A stretch of 64,000 nucleotides of DNA from Ministeria vibrans ATCC 50519 (lineage: Eukaryota; Protista; Filasterea): NCBI GenBank assembly GCA_943704425.1, contig CALSCP010001494.1:123296-187295 (forward strand), read 5' to 3'. The notes under the pieces were generated by a model. It was not told the origin of the DNA. It did no database searches and worked only from the letters and a program-made list of their open reading frames with translations. Shown piece by piece: positions 45,496-56,220 of this stretch (position 1 is its first letter; every line of letters starts with the position of its first letter). Both the position numbers and the translations under genes were made by a program.

Positions 45496-46018
<523 letters not shown>

Positions 46019-46061
46019 ACGATTAAAAAGAAAAGTCTCTGTACAAGTGAAAGTGGATTCC

Positions 46062-47072
46062 TTATGAAGATTGAGCCCACTGCCAAGGCTGCGAACACGT
46101 CGGACACGTGTGTGCCTTTTCAAAGAAGCGTGTACCGCAGTGCTCATGGACACGCGCGGGACAGTCGGGCGAGGGACAGCGAAAGGCGCGCACGACGAGA
46201 GTATGACACAACGCACACTCGTCAATGCCGTCGGTCGAGCGCACCAGGTCACTCAGTTCGAGTACTGTACGCACACCCACGCACAGCTCGTCGCTATCGT
46301 CCAGTTGCACCAGCCAGCCATCGGCAATCCATTTTGCACACAGCTCTTCGCATCGCTCGAGGCCACCGGTGACCGTTCGCTGCGAATCGAGATGCGACCG
46401 AAATTTTACCGCCTCCATTCGCGACAACGAACCCTCGTCGCTGCGCAGGATCTCTTCAATCTGTTTGGAGACAAATCCTCACCATCAGACACAGACACAT
46501 ACACAAGACACATACACAGACACAGTGACACAAGACACAGCCACAGACATAGTGACACAGACACACAAACACATCGTACAATTTTCTTGAAGAATAAAAC
46601 TTCAACGGGACTCAAGGAGGTTGCCAATTTAGCTCGTTCGTCATTGTGGGTGTTGGTCTGCGTCAAACAAAAGTCCAAGCAAGCGCGCCAGTGAGTGAAA
46701 CGGTTTCAATAAGTCGCGCGCATCTTACAAAAACCCAAAACACATCGCCCGTGGCATTCTCGGCGCGCCCACTCTTGATGCCAAACCCAAACGGCTCGAG
46801 GTGGCGGTTGATGTGTGCAACAAAGGACTCAAGATCTCGAAAGAGCTCTACAGAAAGATAAAGGTTAAAGCTCCACCAAAGATCGACCAGAATACCATTC
46901 CTATGGAATCCATCCTTTAGCCTCTCATAGAGACTGTGCATATCTTGGTCAGCCACAATCCTGAAGAGACAAAAAGGAAGAAGGGAGGGAGTTGATTCTG
47001 TTGAGCGTTAGTTGTGCTAACTTACCTTCGTGACATGACTGCCTGTACCAGCAACCGATGCGCGTTCTCCAT
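46062..47072 (-). CDS. NSMCE1: SMC5/6 complex subunit NSE1
   Basis: HRLLVQAVMSR, IN.HL.PFG..I, KLAT.LS..E..FFKK, W..DGWL, VGVR.VLEL and a C-terminal RING-like CALC..C..C..H..C..CPTC..PW. Confidence 0.92.
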
Positions 47073-47332
47073 CTCTGATGAGTCTGATCTCTGATCTTAA
47101 TGATCAATAGTGAAAGTTGTGTGAAGTTGCTACTTGCTTATACAGAGATCAATAAAATATTCGAAAATTGGATCTTCATAATAAAAAATATAATTCTTAG
47201 CCCTATTCTCCACCTCACACTTCCCGCAGGCCTTCCCAGCTCTCAGGTTCAGTGGCGCACGTGTCACCTGGAGAATCCCTGGAACTGTGTTCTCCTTCAT
47301 TTATTTATTTCCACACACACGTCTTGCTCGCC

Positions 47333-50300
47333 ATGGCGTGTAGCCTCTTACAACTCACTCGACTGCTGACCTTGAACGCACCTCGTTTGAGCGTGCTCGT
47401 ATTAGTCGTCTGTCTCTGTCTCGGTATGTTAGTTCAGTCCCCACTGAAAACTCTGTGACGTCAAAAACGTTTCCCAATGCACAAAGTGCCATTCGGACTC
47501 AATGGCCCTCGCCGTGTATCACCCCCGACTCACACTCGGTGTCTTAATGCCTCTGTGAAACCTCTCAGGCCCAACCGCGCTCGTTTTGCGGTGTAGTTTG
47601 TGTGTGCTGACGTCACTCTATGGCGTACTGACCTTTATTCGTTTTTTTTATTTTATTTCGACAGGCCCTTCGCCGTGCCAGGCTGAGGACAACGCCCCCA
47701 TCGAATGTTTCAATGGCGGAACGGCGGTTGCGTCGTCGTGTGGACCAAACCAAAACAGGATTTTGGGCACAGACAGTGGAGAGTACAATTCGCACATTGA
47801 AGTTGACGCGTCAACTGGGCGCTACATACACATTGGCGACTCTGCAGGCGACTGGCCCGCCTCATCTATCCCCGACCCAAGTTCTCGCGGTGTTGTAATC
47901 AACGTTTACAGCCAGGTATTAACTTCGAATCATCTTATTGTTCAATTTGTGTCATATTCGATCGTCTCCTCTCTTTTGTAGGCCACAAACGCTCTCTTAC
48001 TCACCGAAGTGTATGACAGTCACCTTTCGGACGTAGTCTACGACACTTTCATCTCGCCAAGCACGAGCCCTACTACATATTCTTCGATGCTCTACATTGG
48101 CGGCCGCACTGCAGGCGACTTTGGCGGACCTAACGCTGGTAGGAAACTGCCTGTGCGCCTCTTCCTGTTCTCATTTCAAATTGTTGTTTTTTTTTTCTTA
48201 CTGGTTTGTAGGAGGCGACGATGCTTTTGTGATGTCTGTAAACATTCTCACGGGTGCGAAGGAGTTCGTTGCTCAAGAGGGCAGCGTTGCGGACGAAAGT
48301 GTGCGTGCTGTTGTTCATGACGCTGTCTCGGGTCTGACCTTTGCCTTTGGCTTCACCCTTGGTACGTCTGAGCGCACATATGCTACGTTTGCTTCCGTCT
48401 CACTCACTATATCTTTTTCTTGGTATTGTGTAGGGAATATGTTTCGCACATCTTTGGGTGGCGAAGACATGTTCATGTATTCTGTGAATGCGGCCGGTAC
48501 ACGTGTTCACTCACTACAGTGGGGCACGGTCGAGGACGACGAAGGTCTGGCTCTGGCCATCGACAGTCCTCGCAACCGACTGTACGCACTAGGACGCACG
48601 CGCGGCCCTATTTACGGCACCACCTTTGGCAGCAAGGACATGCTTCTCATGCGCTTCGAGGCGTCTACCATGCTTCTCCTGGAAGCTGTTCGTCTTGGCG
48701 GTCCAGGCTCCGAAAATGGGTAAGAAATGAAAAAAAAAAAACAAAAAACAAAAAAACAAAGGCAAAAGCAAAAGATGTAATTTATAATAACAATAATAAT
48801 TATTATTATGTAAATATGCTTATGTTTGATCAGGCAAACGATGGAACTTGATTCGTCAAACGAAGCCATCTTCATCGGAGGCTACACGAGCGACGACCTG
48901 TACGGAGGGATTAACAAAGGCATTGACGATGCCTTTGTTATGCGCGTCCGCATCCACGACCTCGCTGTCGTCTGGTGCAGTCTCATGGGCTCTGCCGGGT
49001 GCGTTCATGCCTTGCATAGTGTTGGAGTTATGTTTTGTCTTTTTTTCTAAACGATTTTTCTTTTGTAGTGACGAGAGTACCGAAGGGATTGCAATGGATT
49101 TTGGGTTGGGTCTTCTCTTTGCGACGGGTTGGACAGAACTTGATCTGTTTGACCCGACCCGCACCACAATGCACCCGCGTGACCACTTCCGTGCAACGCT
49201 TGACATCCACACGGGCGAGCTTGTCGATTCGTACCAGTGGGCGACCCTTCTCGACGCCGACGATCCCGATGTCGCTTGTGACGACCAGTCTCACACTGTG
49301 TACTACACCGGTGAGAATGAAAGGAGACGAAAGAATTCACTGTGTGCTGATTGACCGGGGGGGGGGGTTTCTCTTTGTCATTGCTCATTAGGTTACACGG
49401 ACAATGACCTTGCCGGGACAGGCGCTTCGCTTGGCGGTCATGACTTTGTGATCCGTTCGACTTGTCTTGCGCCCCTTGGCTACTGTAACTGTCCACCGGG
49501 CTATTATGGTCTTACCTGTGCCTCGAGTGCCTGCAACGAAACAACGACCCCCTGTCAGAATGGAGGCACATGTGTCCCCTCCTCAAACCCCACCAACGGC
49601 AACACCACCTGTCTGTGCCCATCTGGCTATACAGGTCCCACCTGTTCGCAGGTGTTGCTGCCGTGCGAGTCGAGTCCGTGCCAAAACGGCGGCTCCTGTT
49701 TGGAGGGTTTTATTTTGGGGGGTACTTCAACTCTCTACTACGCGTGTGTTTGTATGGCGGGCTTTACAGGCGCCGAATGCCAGAACAACATCGACGAGTG
49801 TGCGTCGAGCCCCTGCCTCAATGGTGCGACGTGTGTTGATGGTGTCAATGGCTACTCGTGTACTTGTCCTGCGGGCTGGGAGGGCAATACCTGTGTTACC
49901 AATACGGACGAGTGTGCGTCGAATCCGTGCCCTACTGCCGCGACCTGTATTGACATCGTCAATGGATATTCCTGTGTGTGCCAAGGACCATTTTCTGACG
50001 TCCTCTGCGACCCCGAATTGGACGAGTGCATATCAAACCCGTGCCAGAACGGTGCGTCATGTGTCGATGAACTCTACAGCTATTCGTGTACTTGTGCCGT
50101 TGGCTGGCAGGGAACTCTATGCGAGACGAATATCAACGAGTGCGCGTCGACTCCGTGCCAAAACAATGGCGTGTGCGTGGACGAAGTCAATGGGTACACA
50201 TGCGATTGTGTCGCAGGCTGGGAGGGCGCCCAGTGCCAGACCGATACCAACGAGTGCGCGTCGAATCCGTGCCAGAACGGCGGCGGATGTCTCAATGGTC

Positions 50301-53300
50301 CGGGCATATTCTTATGTGAATGCCCAAGTGGGTGGAATGGACCGATGTGCGAGATCAACGTTGACGAGTGCGCATCGAATCCATGTATCAACGCAGCTAC
50401 GTGTGTCGACGGCGTCAATGGTTTCACATGCGTGTGTGTCGCGGGTTTCCACGGACCTGTGTGCCAGTTCCACACCAACGAGTGCGCGTCGACTCCGTGC
50501 CAGAACAATGGTGTGTGCGTGGACGAAGTCAATGGGTACGCATGCAGTTGTGTTGCGGGCTACGAGGGTACGCATTGTCAGACCAACATCGACGAGTGCG
50601 CGTCGACTCCGTGCCAGAACAATGGTGTGTGCGTGGACGAAGTCAATGGGTACACATGCAGTTGTGTTGCGGGCTACGAGGGTACGCATTGTCAGACCAA
50701 CATCGACGAGTGCGCGTCGACTCCGTGCCAGAACAATGGTGTGTGCGTGGACGAAGTCAATGGGTACACATGCAGTTGTGTTGCGGGCTACGAGGGTACG
50801 TATTGTCAGACCAACATCGACGAGTGCGCGTCGAATCCGTGTCAGAACGGCGGCGCCTGCGTTGACTACGTCAACTCATACACGTGCCGCTGCATCACTG
50901 GCTACCACGGCGCTCAGTGCCAGACCGATACGAACGAGTGCGCTTCGAATCCATGTATCAACGCAGCTACGTGTGTCGACGGCGTCAATGGTTTCACATG
51001 CGTGTGTGTCGCGGGTTTCCACGGACCTGTGTGCCAGTTCCACACCAACGAGTGTGCGTCGACTCCGTGCCAGAACAATGGTGTGTGCATGGACGAAGTC
51101 AATGGGTACACATGCAGTTGTGTTGCGGGCTACGAGGGTGCGCATTGTCAGACCAACATCGACGAGTGCGCGTCGAATCCGTGTCAGAACGACGGCGCCT
51201 GCGTTGATAACGTCAACTCATACACGTGCAACTGTGTCACTGGCTACCACGGCGCTCAGTGCCAGACCGATACCAACGAGTGCGCGTCGAATCCGTGCCA
51301 GAACAATGGCGTGTGTGTCGACATTGCGAATGGGTACACATGCACTTGTGTCGCGGGCTGGGAGGGCGCCCAGTGCCAGACCGATACGAACGAGTGCGCA
51401 TCGAATCCATGTATCAACGCAGCTACGTGTGTCGACGGCGTCAATGGTTTCACATGCGTGTGTGTCGCGGGTTTCCACGGACCTGTGTGCCAGTTCCACA
51501 CCAACGAGTGTGCGTCGACTCCGTGCCAGAACAATGGTGTGTGCGTGGACGAAGTCAATGGGTACGCATGCAGTTGTGTTGCGGGCTACGAGGGTGCACA
51601 TTGTCAGACCAACATCGACGAGTGCGCGTCGACNNNNNNNNGTGCCAGAACAATGGTGTGTGCGTGGACGAAGTCAATGGGTACGCATGCAGTTGTGTTG
51701 CGGGCTACGAGGGTACACATTGTCAGACCAACATCGACGAGTGCGCGTCGAATCCGTGTCAGAACGACGGCGCCTGCGTTGATAACGTCAACTCATACAC
51801 GTGCAACTGTGTCACTGGCTACCACGGCGCTCAGTGCCAGACCGATACCAACGAGTGCGCGTCGAATCCGTGCCAGAACAATGGCGTGTGTGTCGACATT
51901 GCGAATGGGTACACATGCACTTGTGTCGCGGGCTGGGAGGGCGCCCAGTGCCAGACCGATACGAACGAGTGCGCATCGAATCCATGTATCAACGCAGCTA
52001 CGTGTGTCGACGGTGTCAATGGGTATACCTGCTTATGTGCCGTGGGGTTCCAAGGAGTCGTGTGCCAGGTCAACACCGACGAGTGCGCCTCTGCCCCTTG
52101 CCAAAACAACGGTGTGTGTGTCGATGGTATTGACGGCTTTGTCTGCGACTGTCTGACGGGCTTCCAGGGCACTCTCTGCCAGGTTAATACCGACGATTGC
52201 CCGTCGAATCGTTGCGAAAATGGCGCCACTTGTGTCGACGGCGTCGATGACTACACGTGCGCATGTGTTGCGGGATTTGAAGGCGATCTTTGCGCAACCA
52301 ACACCAACGAGTGTGCCTCTAACCCGTGCCAAAACACCGGTGTGTGCGTTGACACAGTCAATGGTTACCAGTGTGCTTGTGTCACTGGCTACACGGGTGC
52401 ATTGTGTCAGGTTGACATTGATGAGTGCGCGAGCAATCCGTGCCAGCACAGCGGGAAATGCGTCAATCGTATTGGCGGCTTTTCGTGTGAGTGTGCGTAC
52501 CATCACACGGGCGCGACGTGCGAAGAGATCAACAAGGATGTCGCCTCCGTGCTGGGCGTCTCATCAACTACCAACTCCACGAATCTCGTTTCGACGCTCG
52601 CCAATGTTACTGTGTCTTCTGAAAATATCGGTGCGTTTGCCGGAGTGGCTAAAAACCTGACGGAGGGCACGAGTGTCGAAGCTCTCTCCACGAGCGACAT
52701 CTCTTCTGTGGTCAAGTTCCTCAACAAGACGCTTGGCGTGAGTCTCGCTTCCGTTAACGACGTCATCCTCACCGACCTGGTTGACGTGACCAGCAATCTG
52801 TTGCGCAGTCCGACCCTCGCACCGGGCAGCAGCGCTTCCACTTCTTCCGAAGCTGTGACCTTTCTCGAACAGTTTTCGGCCAATGCGCTGGGCACGCCCG
52901 TGTTGTGTGCAAGCGAAGCGGCCGTTACTCGCGTCTTGCGCTCGTCCGACGGCCAAATCGAAGCGTCAGCGATGTCACGAACGGGAGCGCAACTGAGCAA
53001 CGGTGCTTCCTTTGAGCGCACCACCGACCGCGTATCGCGCTTCTCTGTCTCCGAACAGGTTGCCGAGCACGTTAGTGCGACGGTGGGAGCTACAACGTGC
53101 ACGCGCGTTGTACTCAATGCCATTGCTACCGCATCGTTCTTCCAAGCGAATACAGAGACGGAGGCGAGCGAGCTTGTCTCGAGCAATGTGTTCACCGTGA
53201 CCTTTGTCGACCTGTTGTTGCCCAGTCCACTGCCCAACGGTGGTAATGTGACGCTTACCATGCAGACGAGTGTGGATACGTTGGAGGCGGACGATTCACA

Positions 53301-55023
53301 GCTGCGCTGTGCTGCCTGGGACTTTTCCACACGTCAGTGGTCCAGCGACGGCTGTGTGCTTGTCTCACGCGACGGTGTTAACGTCGTGTGCTCGTGCACC
53401 CACCTGACCAACTTTGCAGTGCTGTTCGACGTCAATGGCAATGCGCACGACAGCAGTGCACTCACCGTGCTTTCGTACGTGGGTGTGGCACTGGCGATGA
53501 TTGGCAGTGCCACCGTGATACTCGTGTACCTGCTGTTGCGCAAGCTGTGTACCCGTCCCGTCATACTTGTGCTCGTGTGCGCCGCCGCTATTTTTGTCAC
53601 CGAGCTGATGTTCCTCGTCAACTCGCTGGCGTCCAAGTCGGCCTCCGTCACCGGCTGCTTTACACTGGGACTGCTCACGCACTACGCTCTCATGGCGCAA
53701 TTTACAGCGCTGCTCTGCATTGGACTTGGCTTTCACCGACTCCTCCACGATGCGCAGCCGCTGAGTCGTCAGATCCTCCACAGCATGGTAGCCGCCGTGT
53801 TCATTGCGCCCCTCTGCATTGTTGTGCTCTACATGGTGGTGCTGGCGGCTTTGCCCGACGCTAGTGTGTCGAGTGCGTACACAGACGTGTACGGCGATGG
53901 TCGCATCTGCTTTGTCTCCGGCACAGCGCGCCTTGCCTCCGCTGTCTTTGGTCCTGTTGCCGCGGTGCTTGCCATCAACGTGATACTGTGCACTCGCATT
54001 ATTTTGTCGTTGCACGCCAAACAAAAGCAGCTGCCTCATAGTGCACGCGAGTCGCGCGTATCCGTTGCGCTGTCGCTGTCGATTCTGCTGGGCGCTAATT
54101 GGTTGTTTGCCATTGCGGTGGTGGCGCACTCGTCGGTGGTATGGCAGTACCTGTTTGTACTGGCGAATGGTGCGCTAGGCGTGTTCCTCTTTGTCAAGTA
54201 CGCCCTGGCGCACAAGGTGCGCAAGGGCATGGGCGAGTTGGTGTCGTCATGGCGCCATCGTCGCTCGACCACTATCACGGCTCTTCCCACGAACAGCAAG
54301 GGCCGATCCAACACTTCGTTGTTGTCACGCTGGAAGAAGTCGGGCAAGAAGAGTGTCGATGATGTGTCAAGCAGCAGTCGGAGTGGATCTTTGGCGTCGT
54401 CGTCGCGGGGTGGCGGTCGTCGCGGTTCGTGCGAACTCATTCTAGTGCAGGGAAGCGATAGGTCGCTGACATTGGGGCGTCTTGGACACCCACGCCTTGG
54501 CTCGAGCGAGCATGTGTCGCGTCGGACGGGTATGGAGCACGCGACGTGGGGCAGTGACTCGGAACTGGACAGCGTCTCTTTGGAGAGCATGCCGATGACG
54601 AGCCCACGCACACGTACTGGGCGCACCTCTACAACCAACCTCACCGCAACGCTCCTTGAGAATGTGTGCTTTTCGCCTGCGAGCACACCCCGTGGTGGAC
54701 GCCGCGGCACCGGCACGATCGATCCGTACACACCGGGCTCGGGATCTGAGGCGTTTAGTGCGAGTGCTCTTGAGACGAGTCAGGTGTGGGTGACCGATTC
54801 GAGCCTTGGCGACGCAGTGTCCTTTAGCGAGGCGCAACTGGGCGCCATGACGTCGCCACGCAATGGCGGTCGCACGCTGGGCCGTATGGGTCGTGGACGC
54901 AAGGCACTCGAGGATGAGATGTACGAGGTACCGTCTATCATGAAAGAGTTGGACGCCAGCTTTGCAGACCACCTGCAACACGACGTCATTGTGGGCGAAG
55001 ACATGCCTTCCATTCGCGTGTAA
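47333..55023 (+). CDS. Adhesion GPCR #2: signal peptide, split EGF containing a 7-bladed SBBP-type beta-propeller, 26 further EGF, GAIN/GPS, 7TM
   Basis: Exons 47333-47423, 47665-47915, 47982-48138, 48212-48361, 48434-48719, 48834-48998, 49069-49310 and 49392-55023 splice in phase. The only frame break is at the N gap 51634-51641. GPS is CSCTHL|TNFAVLF. Confidence 0.92.
50130..52075 (+). repeat. Coding tandem array of near-identical 114-bp cbEGF units with higher-order structure
   Basis: Recurring unit types: STPCQNNGVCVDEVNG (A), SNPCINAATC (B), GACVD.VNSY (C) and VDIANGY (D). Confidence 0.95.
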
Positions 55024-55196: not shown

Positions 55197-56220
55197 TTAT
55201 TGTGGTCTTTCGACAAACTTGGCAAACACAATAACACCGGCGAGGGAGAAGACAAACGCAACCCAGCCAAAGGCGTAGGCGGTGGATAGAGTGAAGTTGG
55301 GATAGGTTCCTGCGTAGCTGACAGTGAACGTTACGAGGGCCGTCAAGAGAAAGAGAGATGAGAGGACATGGCAGACGACTGACACTTTTATGGTATCTAA
55401 GGATAAAAAGACGTTGGTGCGCTGAGTTAGGGTGTTTATTAATATGTGCGTATGGAGTATGTCAGTGAGTTTGTCTGTGTCAGTGTGCGAGTGAGTGCGA
55501 GTGTGTCTGTGCCAGTGTGTGTGTGAGTGCGAATGTGTCTGTGTCAGTGTGTGTGTGTGAGTGCGAGTGTGTCCGTGTCAGTGTGTGTGTGAGTGCGAGT
55601 GTGTCTGTGTCAGTGTGTGTGTGTGAGTGCGAATGTGTCTGTGTCAGTGTGTGTGTGTGAGTGCGAGTGTGTCCGTGTCAGTGTGTGTGTGAGTGCGAGT
55701 GTGTCCGTGTCAGTGTGTGTGTGAGTGCGAGTGTGTCCGTGTCAGTGTGCGTGTGATTGCGAATGTGTCTGTGCCAGTGTGTGTGTGTGTGAGTGCGTGT
55801 GTGTGTGTGTGTGTATGTGTGTGTGTGAGTGCGTGAGTGCTTCGCGTGTGTTTTGTGTGCATAGAGACAGTCTGTCTGAACAGCATACCTTTTCCATTGC
55901 GATAAGCCAAAAACGAAGCAACGACAGTGGCAAAGGACGGAAACATAGTGAGGCACATGAATGCTTGAACAGCCTTGAACCAGGGGGGCAGTGCGGACAG
56001 CGTCAGGCTGCTGCACCCTTGCGTTGCGGAGACGGCGCACTACAGACCGAGTTCGCTTAATATTAATAAGTTATGGTGATCATCGGACACTGACCTGTCG
56101 CCACAAACCAATGTGGGTGTTGCCGTTTTCAATCCACGAGGCCATGCCAAGCGAGATAACAACGGCGGTGAACGTGAGAACGGCGTAGAGCCATGAACCG
56201 ACTGGTCGGAACTTCGGCAT
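55197..56220 (-). CDS. PMP22/EMP/claudin-superfamily 4-TM protein
   Basis: Three coding exons give ..ASW..HIGLWRQ|CAVSATQGC..WFKAVQAFMCL..|..AYAFGWVAF, matching the W-GLW-C-C signature. Confidence 0.88.
55460..55838. repeat. Intronic ~30-bp GT-rich minisatellite
   Basis: Repeated GAGTGCGA(G/A)TGTGTC(T/C)GTGTCAGTGTGTGT units. Confidence 0.9.

Follow-up and report, generated by a model that had tools for sequence, protein, structure and literature searches.

A transcribed gene of the filasterean Ministeria vibrans predicted to encode an adhesion GPCR whose long EGF stalk carries a propeller head of SBBP/CylK type

The window analyzed here is a stretch of 64,000 nt from Ministeria vibrans ATCC 50519 (GenBank assembly GCA_943704425.1, contig CALSCP010001494.1, positions 123,296 to 187,295 of the forward strand), and all positions below are counted from its first letter. 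Reading the three plus-strand frames together with the splice signals, we found at 47333-55020, on the plus strand and in a eukaryotic, intron-rich region, a gene of eight exons whose introns are all GT-AG and whose joined frame contains no stop. Its encoded order is that of a G protein-coupled receptor (GPCR) of the adhesion type: a signal peptide, a short Cys piece, seven repeats of ~55 amino acids (aa), a 4-Cys EGF remnant, ~26 EGF domains, a GPS motif, and a seven-transmembrane (7TM) core. In the spliced frame, the repeats occupy residues 65-470 and are flanked by Cys-rich pieces at residues 31-64 (hereafter the N piece) and 471-490 (the C piece). A first-pass annotation had described the interval 47665-49520 as a beta-propeller set inside an EGF module; this interval opens with exon 2 and closes where the first Cys-rich piece of exon 8 ends, and the spliced frame reads as that annotation said. 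The features of the gene are as follows.

47200..47332, plus strand: 5' untranslated region; RNA contigs start at 47184-47226, with no upstream ATG in the stretch
47333..47423, plus strand: exon 1, start codon and signal peptide (30 aa and 1 base); RNA joint 47423/47665
47665..47915, plus strand: exon 2, Cys-rich N piece (residues 31-64; Cys35, Cys45, Cys56; C-x-N-G-G-T) and most of blade 1
47982..48138, plus strand: exon 3, last part of blade 1 and the greater part of blade 2
48212..48361, plus strand: exon 4, last part of blade 2 (G-D-D-A-F-V motif) and first part of blade 3
48434..48719, plus strand: exon 5, end of blade 3, whole of blade 4, and start of blade 5; CylK/SBBP homology
48834..48998, plus strand: exon 6, blade 5 (Cys360)
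49069..49310, plus strand: exon 7, blade 6 and the first part of blade 7 (Cys437)
49392..49459, plus strand: start of exon 8, final strands of the short blade 7 (46 aa); RNA joint 49310/49392
49460..49519, plus strand: C piece, 4-Cys EGF remnant C-x6-C-x-C-x8-C (Cys472, Cys479, Cys481, Cys490); partial match to Pfam EGF_2
49520..52521, plus strand: stalk of ~26 EGF domains, mostly of calcium-binding type, with an 8-N assembly gap inside (51634-51641)
52522..53424, plus strand: GAIN region with the GPS motif at its end; cleavage predicted to fall between 53406 and 53407
53458..54186, plus strand: 7TM core of secretin/adhesion type; 7tm_2 match
54187..55020, plus strand: cytoplasmic tail and stop codon; open frame

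Exon 8 as a whole (49392-55020) is a single open frame of ~5.6 kb, interrupted only at the 8-N gap, which falls within a run of near-identical EGF domains and shifts the reading frame. The EGF array has probably collapsed in the assembly, and hence the number of EGF domains and the length of the protein (at least ~2320 aa) are minimum figures.

Transcription was followed in sequencing runs picked with 60 to 73% of the words of a 2.5-kb stretch (~66% exonic) present. The runs are marine and dated 2011 (RNA), 2022 (DNA), and 2025 (RNA); four of them (X1, X3, X5, and X6) were mapped, over positions 45800-50000 only. Single RNA contigs of 2,267 nt (X1) and 2,258 nt (X3) begin in the 5' untranslated region, at 47200 and 47226, respectively, leave out precisely the seven modelled introns, and reach beyond 50000 in the EGF exon. 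The fifth joint is untabulated, that intron containing a simple repeat, and is read from the X3 contig (record 5), which goes straight from 48718 to 48833. Subsets of the joints are also shown by X5, from a separate study, and by X6, which is labelled as polyA RNA-seq of a marine metagenome and contributes two junctions. All seven introns, for which the first-pass annotation had suggested a check against RNA, are thus borne out, and since single contigs of two runs span all the junctions, the propeller exons and the EGF exon belong to one gene and one transcript rather than to separate genes. A low-depth X1 contig (record 3, depth 3.6) is collinear with intron 1 over 47396-47674 and comes from either unspliced pre-mRNA or DNA carry-over. 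At the protein level, word-index and full-library searches of public protein sets returned no copy of the spliced protein, and the proteome of this genome is apparently absent from those sets. One entry with a seeming positional match to the protein, P0243, is a bacterial protein and was discarded.

The seven repeats, of 46 to 65 aa each, begin at residues 65, 125, 190, 247, 305, 364, and 425, and the repeat motifs named in the first-pass annotation are all present at these starts. They lie well outside what chance would give: with its 94 aa, exon 5 on its own finds the solved, seven-bladed beta-propeller of CylK, a cyanobacterial enzyme, in the PDB (7fh6 and 7ron) with an E value of 7e-10, in six matched stretches along the propeller. 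In a library of 1.84 billion representatives, the same exon retrieved 7,933 proteins at E<=1e-3 and 42 at E<=1e-30, with a best E value of 3e-76. Eight top matches were scanned with Pfam and all bear SBBP, six of them with 4 to 10 repeats at 116 to 302 bits; against proteins bearing 4 to 10 Pfam SBBP repeats, exon 5 reaches E values of 1e-33 to 1e-59. Within the genome, a 216-aa exon of the closest paralogue (C1606) matches CylK at 4e-15, and paralogues at C2020, C642, and C2253 pass the Pfam SBBP model (PF06739) at its gathering score. The resemblance first noticed to SBBP propellers of prokaryotic surface proteins is therefore upheld by the matches of exon 5 to CylK and to SBBP proteins, and on these homologies we assign the blades to the SBBP/CylK superfamily, in a diverged form.

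Blade 7 is short (46 aa), and a strand patterned like the last strand of a blade stands before blade 1. Such features commonly mark a ring closed by an N-terminal strand, and we infer that this strand probably completes blade 7 in a velcro closure, which would bring the two ends of the propeller together. The structure of module B of the paralogue C642, the only paralogous module whole in one open frame, was predicted with both its flanks by AlphaFold from a 14-row alignment; MAFFT misplaced fragments of the N part when distant rows of the C part were included, so the 14-row alignment was the usable one. The model has a mean pLDDT of 62, a pTM of 0.65, and an all-beta core of ~28 strands. Its best structural matches are five CylK entries (E of ~1e-9, TM of 0.50 to 0.55), followed by the propellers of LRP2/LRP6 and WD40 propellers. 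The seven blades of the present protein would form a closed ring.

In its EGF, GPS, and 7TM matches, the remainder of exon 8 agrees with the receptor architecture put forward by the first-pass annotation, namely, a stalk of ~26 EGF domains coupled to a GAIN-7TM unit. Pfam finds 18 plus 8 EGF stretches, many of them calcium binding, a GPS at 48.4 bits (cut-off, 22.5), and a 7tm_2 domain at 65.2 bits (E of 7e-18; cut-off, 20.6). The cleavage motif C-x-C-x-H-L-T-x-F-A-V-L is intact and lies directly before the first transmembrane segment. For the GAIN-7TM part, the closest relatives that bear a name are adhesion GPCRs of metazoans (ADGRG6-like and ADGRD1), at 26 to 30% identity. By these domain matches, the gene product is classified as an adhesion GPCR.

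The propeller is not confined to this gene. Searches of the 29.7-Mb genome (2,860 contigs) with exon 5 and PF06739 placed the same propeller at at least nine other loci, always together with EGF, at 20 to 39% identity to the present gene and with different intron positions. The closest paralogue, C1606 (up to 39% identity), has the N piece, propeller exons, the 4-Cys C piece, EGF domains, GPS, and 7tm_2; its introns lie elsewhere, and a single exon encodes four of its blades. The adhesion GPCRs at C2020, C642, and C352 are giants in which propeller-EGF modules stand in tandem. C945 (about 268900-279300; L028:2934-9998 and L029:1-5349) is a 3,472-aa open frame with a receptor-L domain, two EGF domains, a seven-blade propeller, and ~25 EGF domains; its SBBP-like propeller is interrupted by a low-complexity insert (poly-Thr and Gly-Ser), and the end of its frame meets an assembly gap. 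In C31 and C1374, EGF arrays are followed by the propeller. The first-pass view of a singular graft does not hold, as the propeller and the same C-side remnant recur at these loci, sibling adhesion GPCRs included. From this comparison, the gene is placed in a lineage-specific family that has multiplied and reshuffled its propeller and EGF modules.

The propellers of this family are bordered by short Cys-rich pieces. The 4-Cys C piece stands right after the last blade in all 18 family modules, and in all 18 the first two cysteines of an EGF (C1-C2) are missing. In the present gene, it covers positions 13 to 32 of the 32 positions of Pfam EGF_2 (that is, C3 to C6) with an E value of 3e-4 and 21.4 bits, 0.7 bits under the cut-off of 22.1, so that an EGF portion after the propeller, as first described, is indeed found directly behind blade 7. 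The C pieces of two paralogue modules gave weak Pfam matches, to positions 14 to 32 of EGF_2 in one and 11 to 32 of laminin-EGF in the other. The pieces in front of the propeller are of two kinds. Internal modules of the family have a 4-Cys piece with tenascin-type spacing (C-x3-C-x5-C-x5-C), and a 2-Cys piece (C-x-N-G/D-G-x2-V-x3-C) marks the first module in four genes, among them the present one. In the three siblings, the 2-Cys motif comes right after the signal peptide, at the first propeller (L021:3537-3791, L022:3286-3540, and L026:3899-4132), and Cys45, Asn47, Gly49, Val52, and Cys56 are invariant in the N pieces of the four genes. Cys35, the putative first cysteine of an EGF, is unique to the present gene; none of the three paralogues with an N piece of this kind has an equivalent.

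Altogether, we propose, with a probability of about 0.8, that this marine, unicellular holozoan has at the locus an adhesion GPCR gene which is intact and expressed, and whose product would carry a closed seven-bladed SBBP/CylK propeller head, a long EGF stalk, a GAIN domain, and a 7TM core. Gene structure, transcription, domain identities, and family are what the analysis shows, to which this proposal adds the ring closure, the ligand, and the signalling that such a protein would be expected to have. Several results weigh against it. The RNA support ends at 50000, and the link onward to the 7TM core is an open frame broken by the 8-N gap. The model PF06739 itself, against which the first-pass annotation had suggested running the protein, matches no single exon of the gene at E<=1 in an exon-by-exon scan, and a six-frame scan of the whole genome with the same model does not list this locus; membership of the family hence rests on homology to SBBP proteins and not on the curated model. 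Finally, GAIN scores 14.1 bits, under its cut-off of 26.5, with ~260 aa between the last EGF and the GPS.

The propeller exons could in principle come from a separate gene, or from bacterial contamination of a mixed-culture assembly, and have been joined to the receptor by the splicing model only; the genome is split into many contigs, and Ministeria vibrans was assembled from culture metagenomic data (2022 genome paper). We consider such an artefact hardly credible. Single RNA contigs that span all joints link the exon of the signal peptide with every propeller exon and with the EGF exon, which rules out both separate genes and contamination; moreover, the seven introns are all spliceosomal, and paralogues have the same layout. 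A finer issue within the proposed receptor is whether a single EGF-like module encloses the propeller, with the N piece as the first part of that module, the C piece as the rest, and EGF-type disulfides across the neck. The pairing could then be, for example, Cys45-Cys479 and Cys56-Cys472 across the neck, with Cys481-Cys490 local; in the siblings, C1-x3-C2-x5-C3 and an extra Cys would precede the propeller, an extra Cys and C4-x-C5-x8-C6 would follow it, and the extra pair would staple the neck. Such nesting is suggested by the C piece, which aligns to the last two thirds of EGF models only and lacks C1-C2 in every module, and by the co-occurrence of the pieces: each propeller bearing a C piece also has a Cys piece in front, and the C945 propeller, placed between complete EGF domains, has neither. 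The sequence that follows Cys45 aligns with the C2-to-C3 part of the EGF profile made from this gene, Ala standing where C3 would be, and the short blade 7 together with the extra strand before blade 1 would put the two pieces side by side. Yet the N piece has no Pfam match and scores 3 bits against the gene's own EGF profile, a score equalled by 15 of 200 shuffles; the short N flanks of paralogues have no Pfam match either, and those of internal modules score no better than shuffles against the local EGF profile. Cys35 is missing from all three paralogues with the N piece, the mature N-terminal region has nine cysteines, an odd number, and the pieces of the paralogues have an even number each, so each could be self-contained. 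Both flanks of the modelled C642 module also have a pLDDT below 50. On balance, the nested arrangement is possible but falls somewhat short of probable. Taken further, to an SBBP propeller lying in the C3-C4 loop of an EGF-like module with its neck closed by disulfides, as an ultimately bacterial cassette reused once here and up to seven times in siblings, the proposal is a tentative one and rather doubtful.

A bacterial origin of the propeller by horizontal transfer, a possibility raised by the first-pass annotation, may be conceived in a strong form, as a recent graft into this gene, or in a weak form, as an ancient entry followed by the gain of introns and spread among EGF proteins; overall, we give horizontal transfer nearly even odds. 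Among the 150 best library matches, almost every one resembles a lipoprotein or surface protein of bacteria, those checked being SBBP proteins, and PF06739 is detected in bacterial and archaeal control genomes. The best single-blade scores of exon 5 are 40 to 46 bits against bacterial proteins and 21 to 28 bits against paralogues of its own genome, but this gap is a poor guide to ancestry, as the library matches were selected with exon 5, bacterial blades lie near the family consensus, and the remaining exons score alike against paralogues and bacteria. The recent graft into this one gene is rejected: the propeller stands at at least nine other loci with different introns and only 20 to 39% identity, a paralogue has the same layout, and six introns lie inside the propeller region of this gene. 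Any transfer must thus predate the expansion of the family. The propeller also occurs in other eukaryotes, as in the distant marine protist Mantamonas plastica, whose protein P0142 (EukProt; 1,560 aa) combines SBBP with ephrin-receptor-like repeats and NCD3G; the NCD3G of P0142 is a Cys-rich domain of class C GPCRs. Another EGF+SBBP protein looks eukaryotic by its sequence features. Conversely, P0151 (L034:6001-7563) is an EGF+SBBP lipoprotein in a plainly bacterial contig, where the adjacent genes encode DNA polymerase III delta, a sigma-54 activator, and DsbA. The EGF+SBBP pair thus exists outside eukaryotes as well, and any transfer could have run in either direction. P0151, P0213, P0196, and P0181 are all bacterial lipoprotein-like, with a canonical EGF of calcium-binding type directly followed by a seven-blade SBBP propeller. 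An old bacterial origin of the domain, earlier than the family expansion, is plausible.

Set beside known systems, the head resembles the CylK/SBBP (PF06739) propellers in its ~55-aa repeat, its G-x-x-D-A-F-V and G-T-x-x-D motifs, and its seven repeats. It differs from them in that a eukaryotic gene encodes it, with six introns cutting through it and with EGF, GAIN, and 7TM in the same chain, and in being too diverged for the Pfam model on single exons; moreover, CylK is a cytoplasmic alkylating enzyme, whereas nothing suggests catalysis here. The siblings C1606, C2020, C642, and C352 share the propeller, the 4-Cys piece after the last blade, and the GPS-7TM end; the present gene has one propeller and a very long stalk of calcium-binding EGF domains, whereas C2020, C642, and C352 have several modules and few EGF domains. 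The YWTD propeller-EGF units of the LDL-receptor family likewise alternate a propeller with EGF in an extracellular chain, and LRP2 and LRP6 are among the matches of the paralogue model; their propellers, however, have six blades, belong to an unrelated repeat family, and are placed between complete EGF domains. The laminin L4 domain, inserted in a laminin-type EGF, would be a precedent for a globular domain nested in an EGF-like module, to which the weak laminin-EGF matches of the C piece may be compared, although the inserted fold is not the same.

Among adhesion GPCRs, propeller heads are known in the form of olfactomedin in latrophilins and EAR in ADGRV1, and EGF stalks are found in ADGRE and CELSR. 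The present protein shares with the metazoan receptors a propeller or EGF array on a GAIN-7TM unit, with GPS and 7tm_2, but its propeller is of the SBBP family rather than olfactomedin or EAR, and it is orthologous to no metazoan subfamily. The searched literature contains no co-occurrence of SBBP with adhesion GPCRs. As far as its main text goes, an eLife 2025 catalogue that covers choanoflagellates and filastereans surveys 76 filasterean adhesion GPCRs, the Ministeria vibrans proteome being included, with EGF, PQQ, and RLD among their ectodomains (PMC12716839); the words SBBP and propeller are absent from that main text. PQQ and RLD are themselves of propeller type. The first-pass remark that no adhesion GPCR of this architecture was known to have been described may hold for the combination with SBBP, within the literature searched; propeller-type heads as such are already on record.

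We propose a model in which a short disulfide-bearing cap would follow the signal peptide and precede the closed seven-bladed propeller, itself followed by the 4-Cys EGF remnant, ~26 mostly calcium-binding EGF domains, a GAIN domain whose H-L-T cleavage motif is intact, and a 7TM core of secretin type. Held out on a stiff stalk of EGF domains, the propeller would bind a partner outside the cell, which may be a glycan or protein on the surface of prey bacteria or of the substrate. Binding, or pull on the stalk, would be passed on to the GAIN domain, whereupon the tethered peptide after the cleavage site would become exposed and switch on the 7TM core. By analogy with other adhesion GPCRs, the mode of action is likely the same as theirs, including autoproteolysis and activation by a tethered agonist.

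The surroundings of the gene can be described briefly. A neighbouring gene on the minus strand, at 45909-47025, has four short introns that read CT..AC on the plus strand (= GT-AG), and the word depth of its contig is ~10 times that of the GPCR in the same RNA runs. Just 3' of the GPCR stop, at 55469-55900, lies a long microsatellite rich in GT/GC, several frames of which translate into Cys-Val repeats.

Our study describes an adhesion GPCR in which a long EGF stalk bears an SBBP/CylK-type propeller as its head, and thereby widens the known ectodomains of this receptor class. Adhesion GPCRs are central to ideas on the origin of cell-surface sensing before animals, and a close unicellular relative of animals would here use a propeller typical of bacterial surface proteins as a receptor head, with a whole family built from propeller and EGF. 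The family offers a concrete case for testing domain recruitment, possibly across kingdoms. If the nested arrangement is true, the propeller-in-EGF cassette would add a new case of a domain inserted in an EGF-like module and, for adhesion GPCRs, a new kind of nested ectodomain. The head may, moreover, constitute a tractable target that could be expressed and screened against bacterial or substrate ligands.

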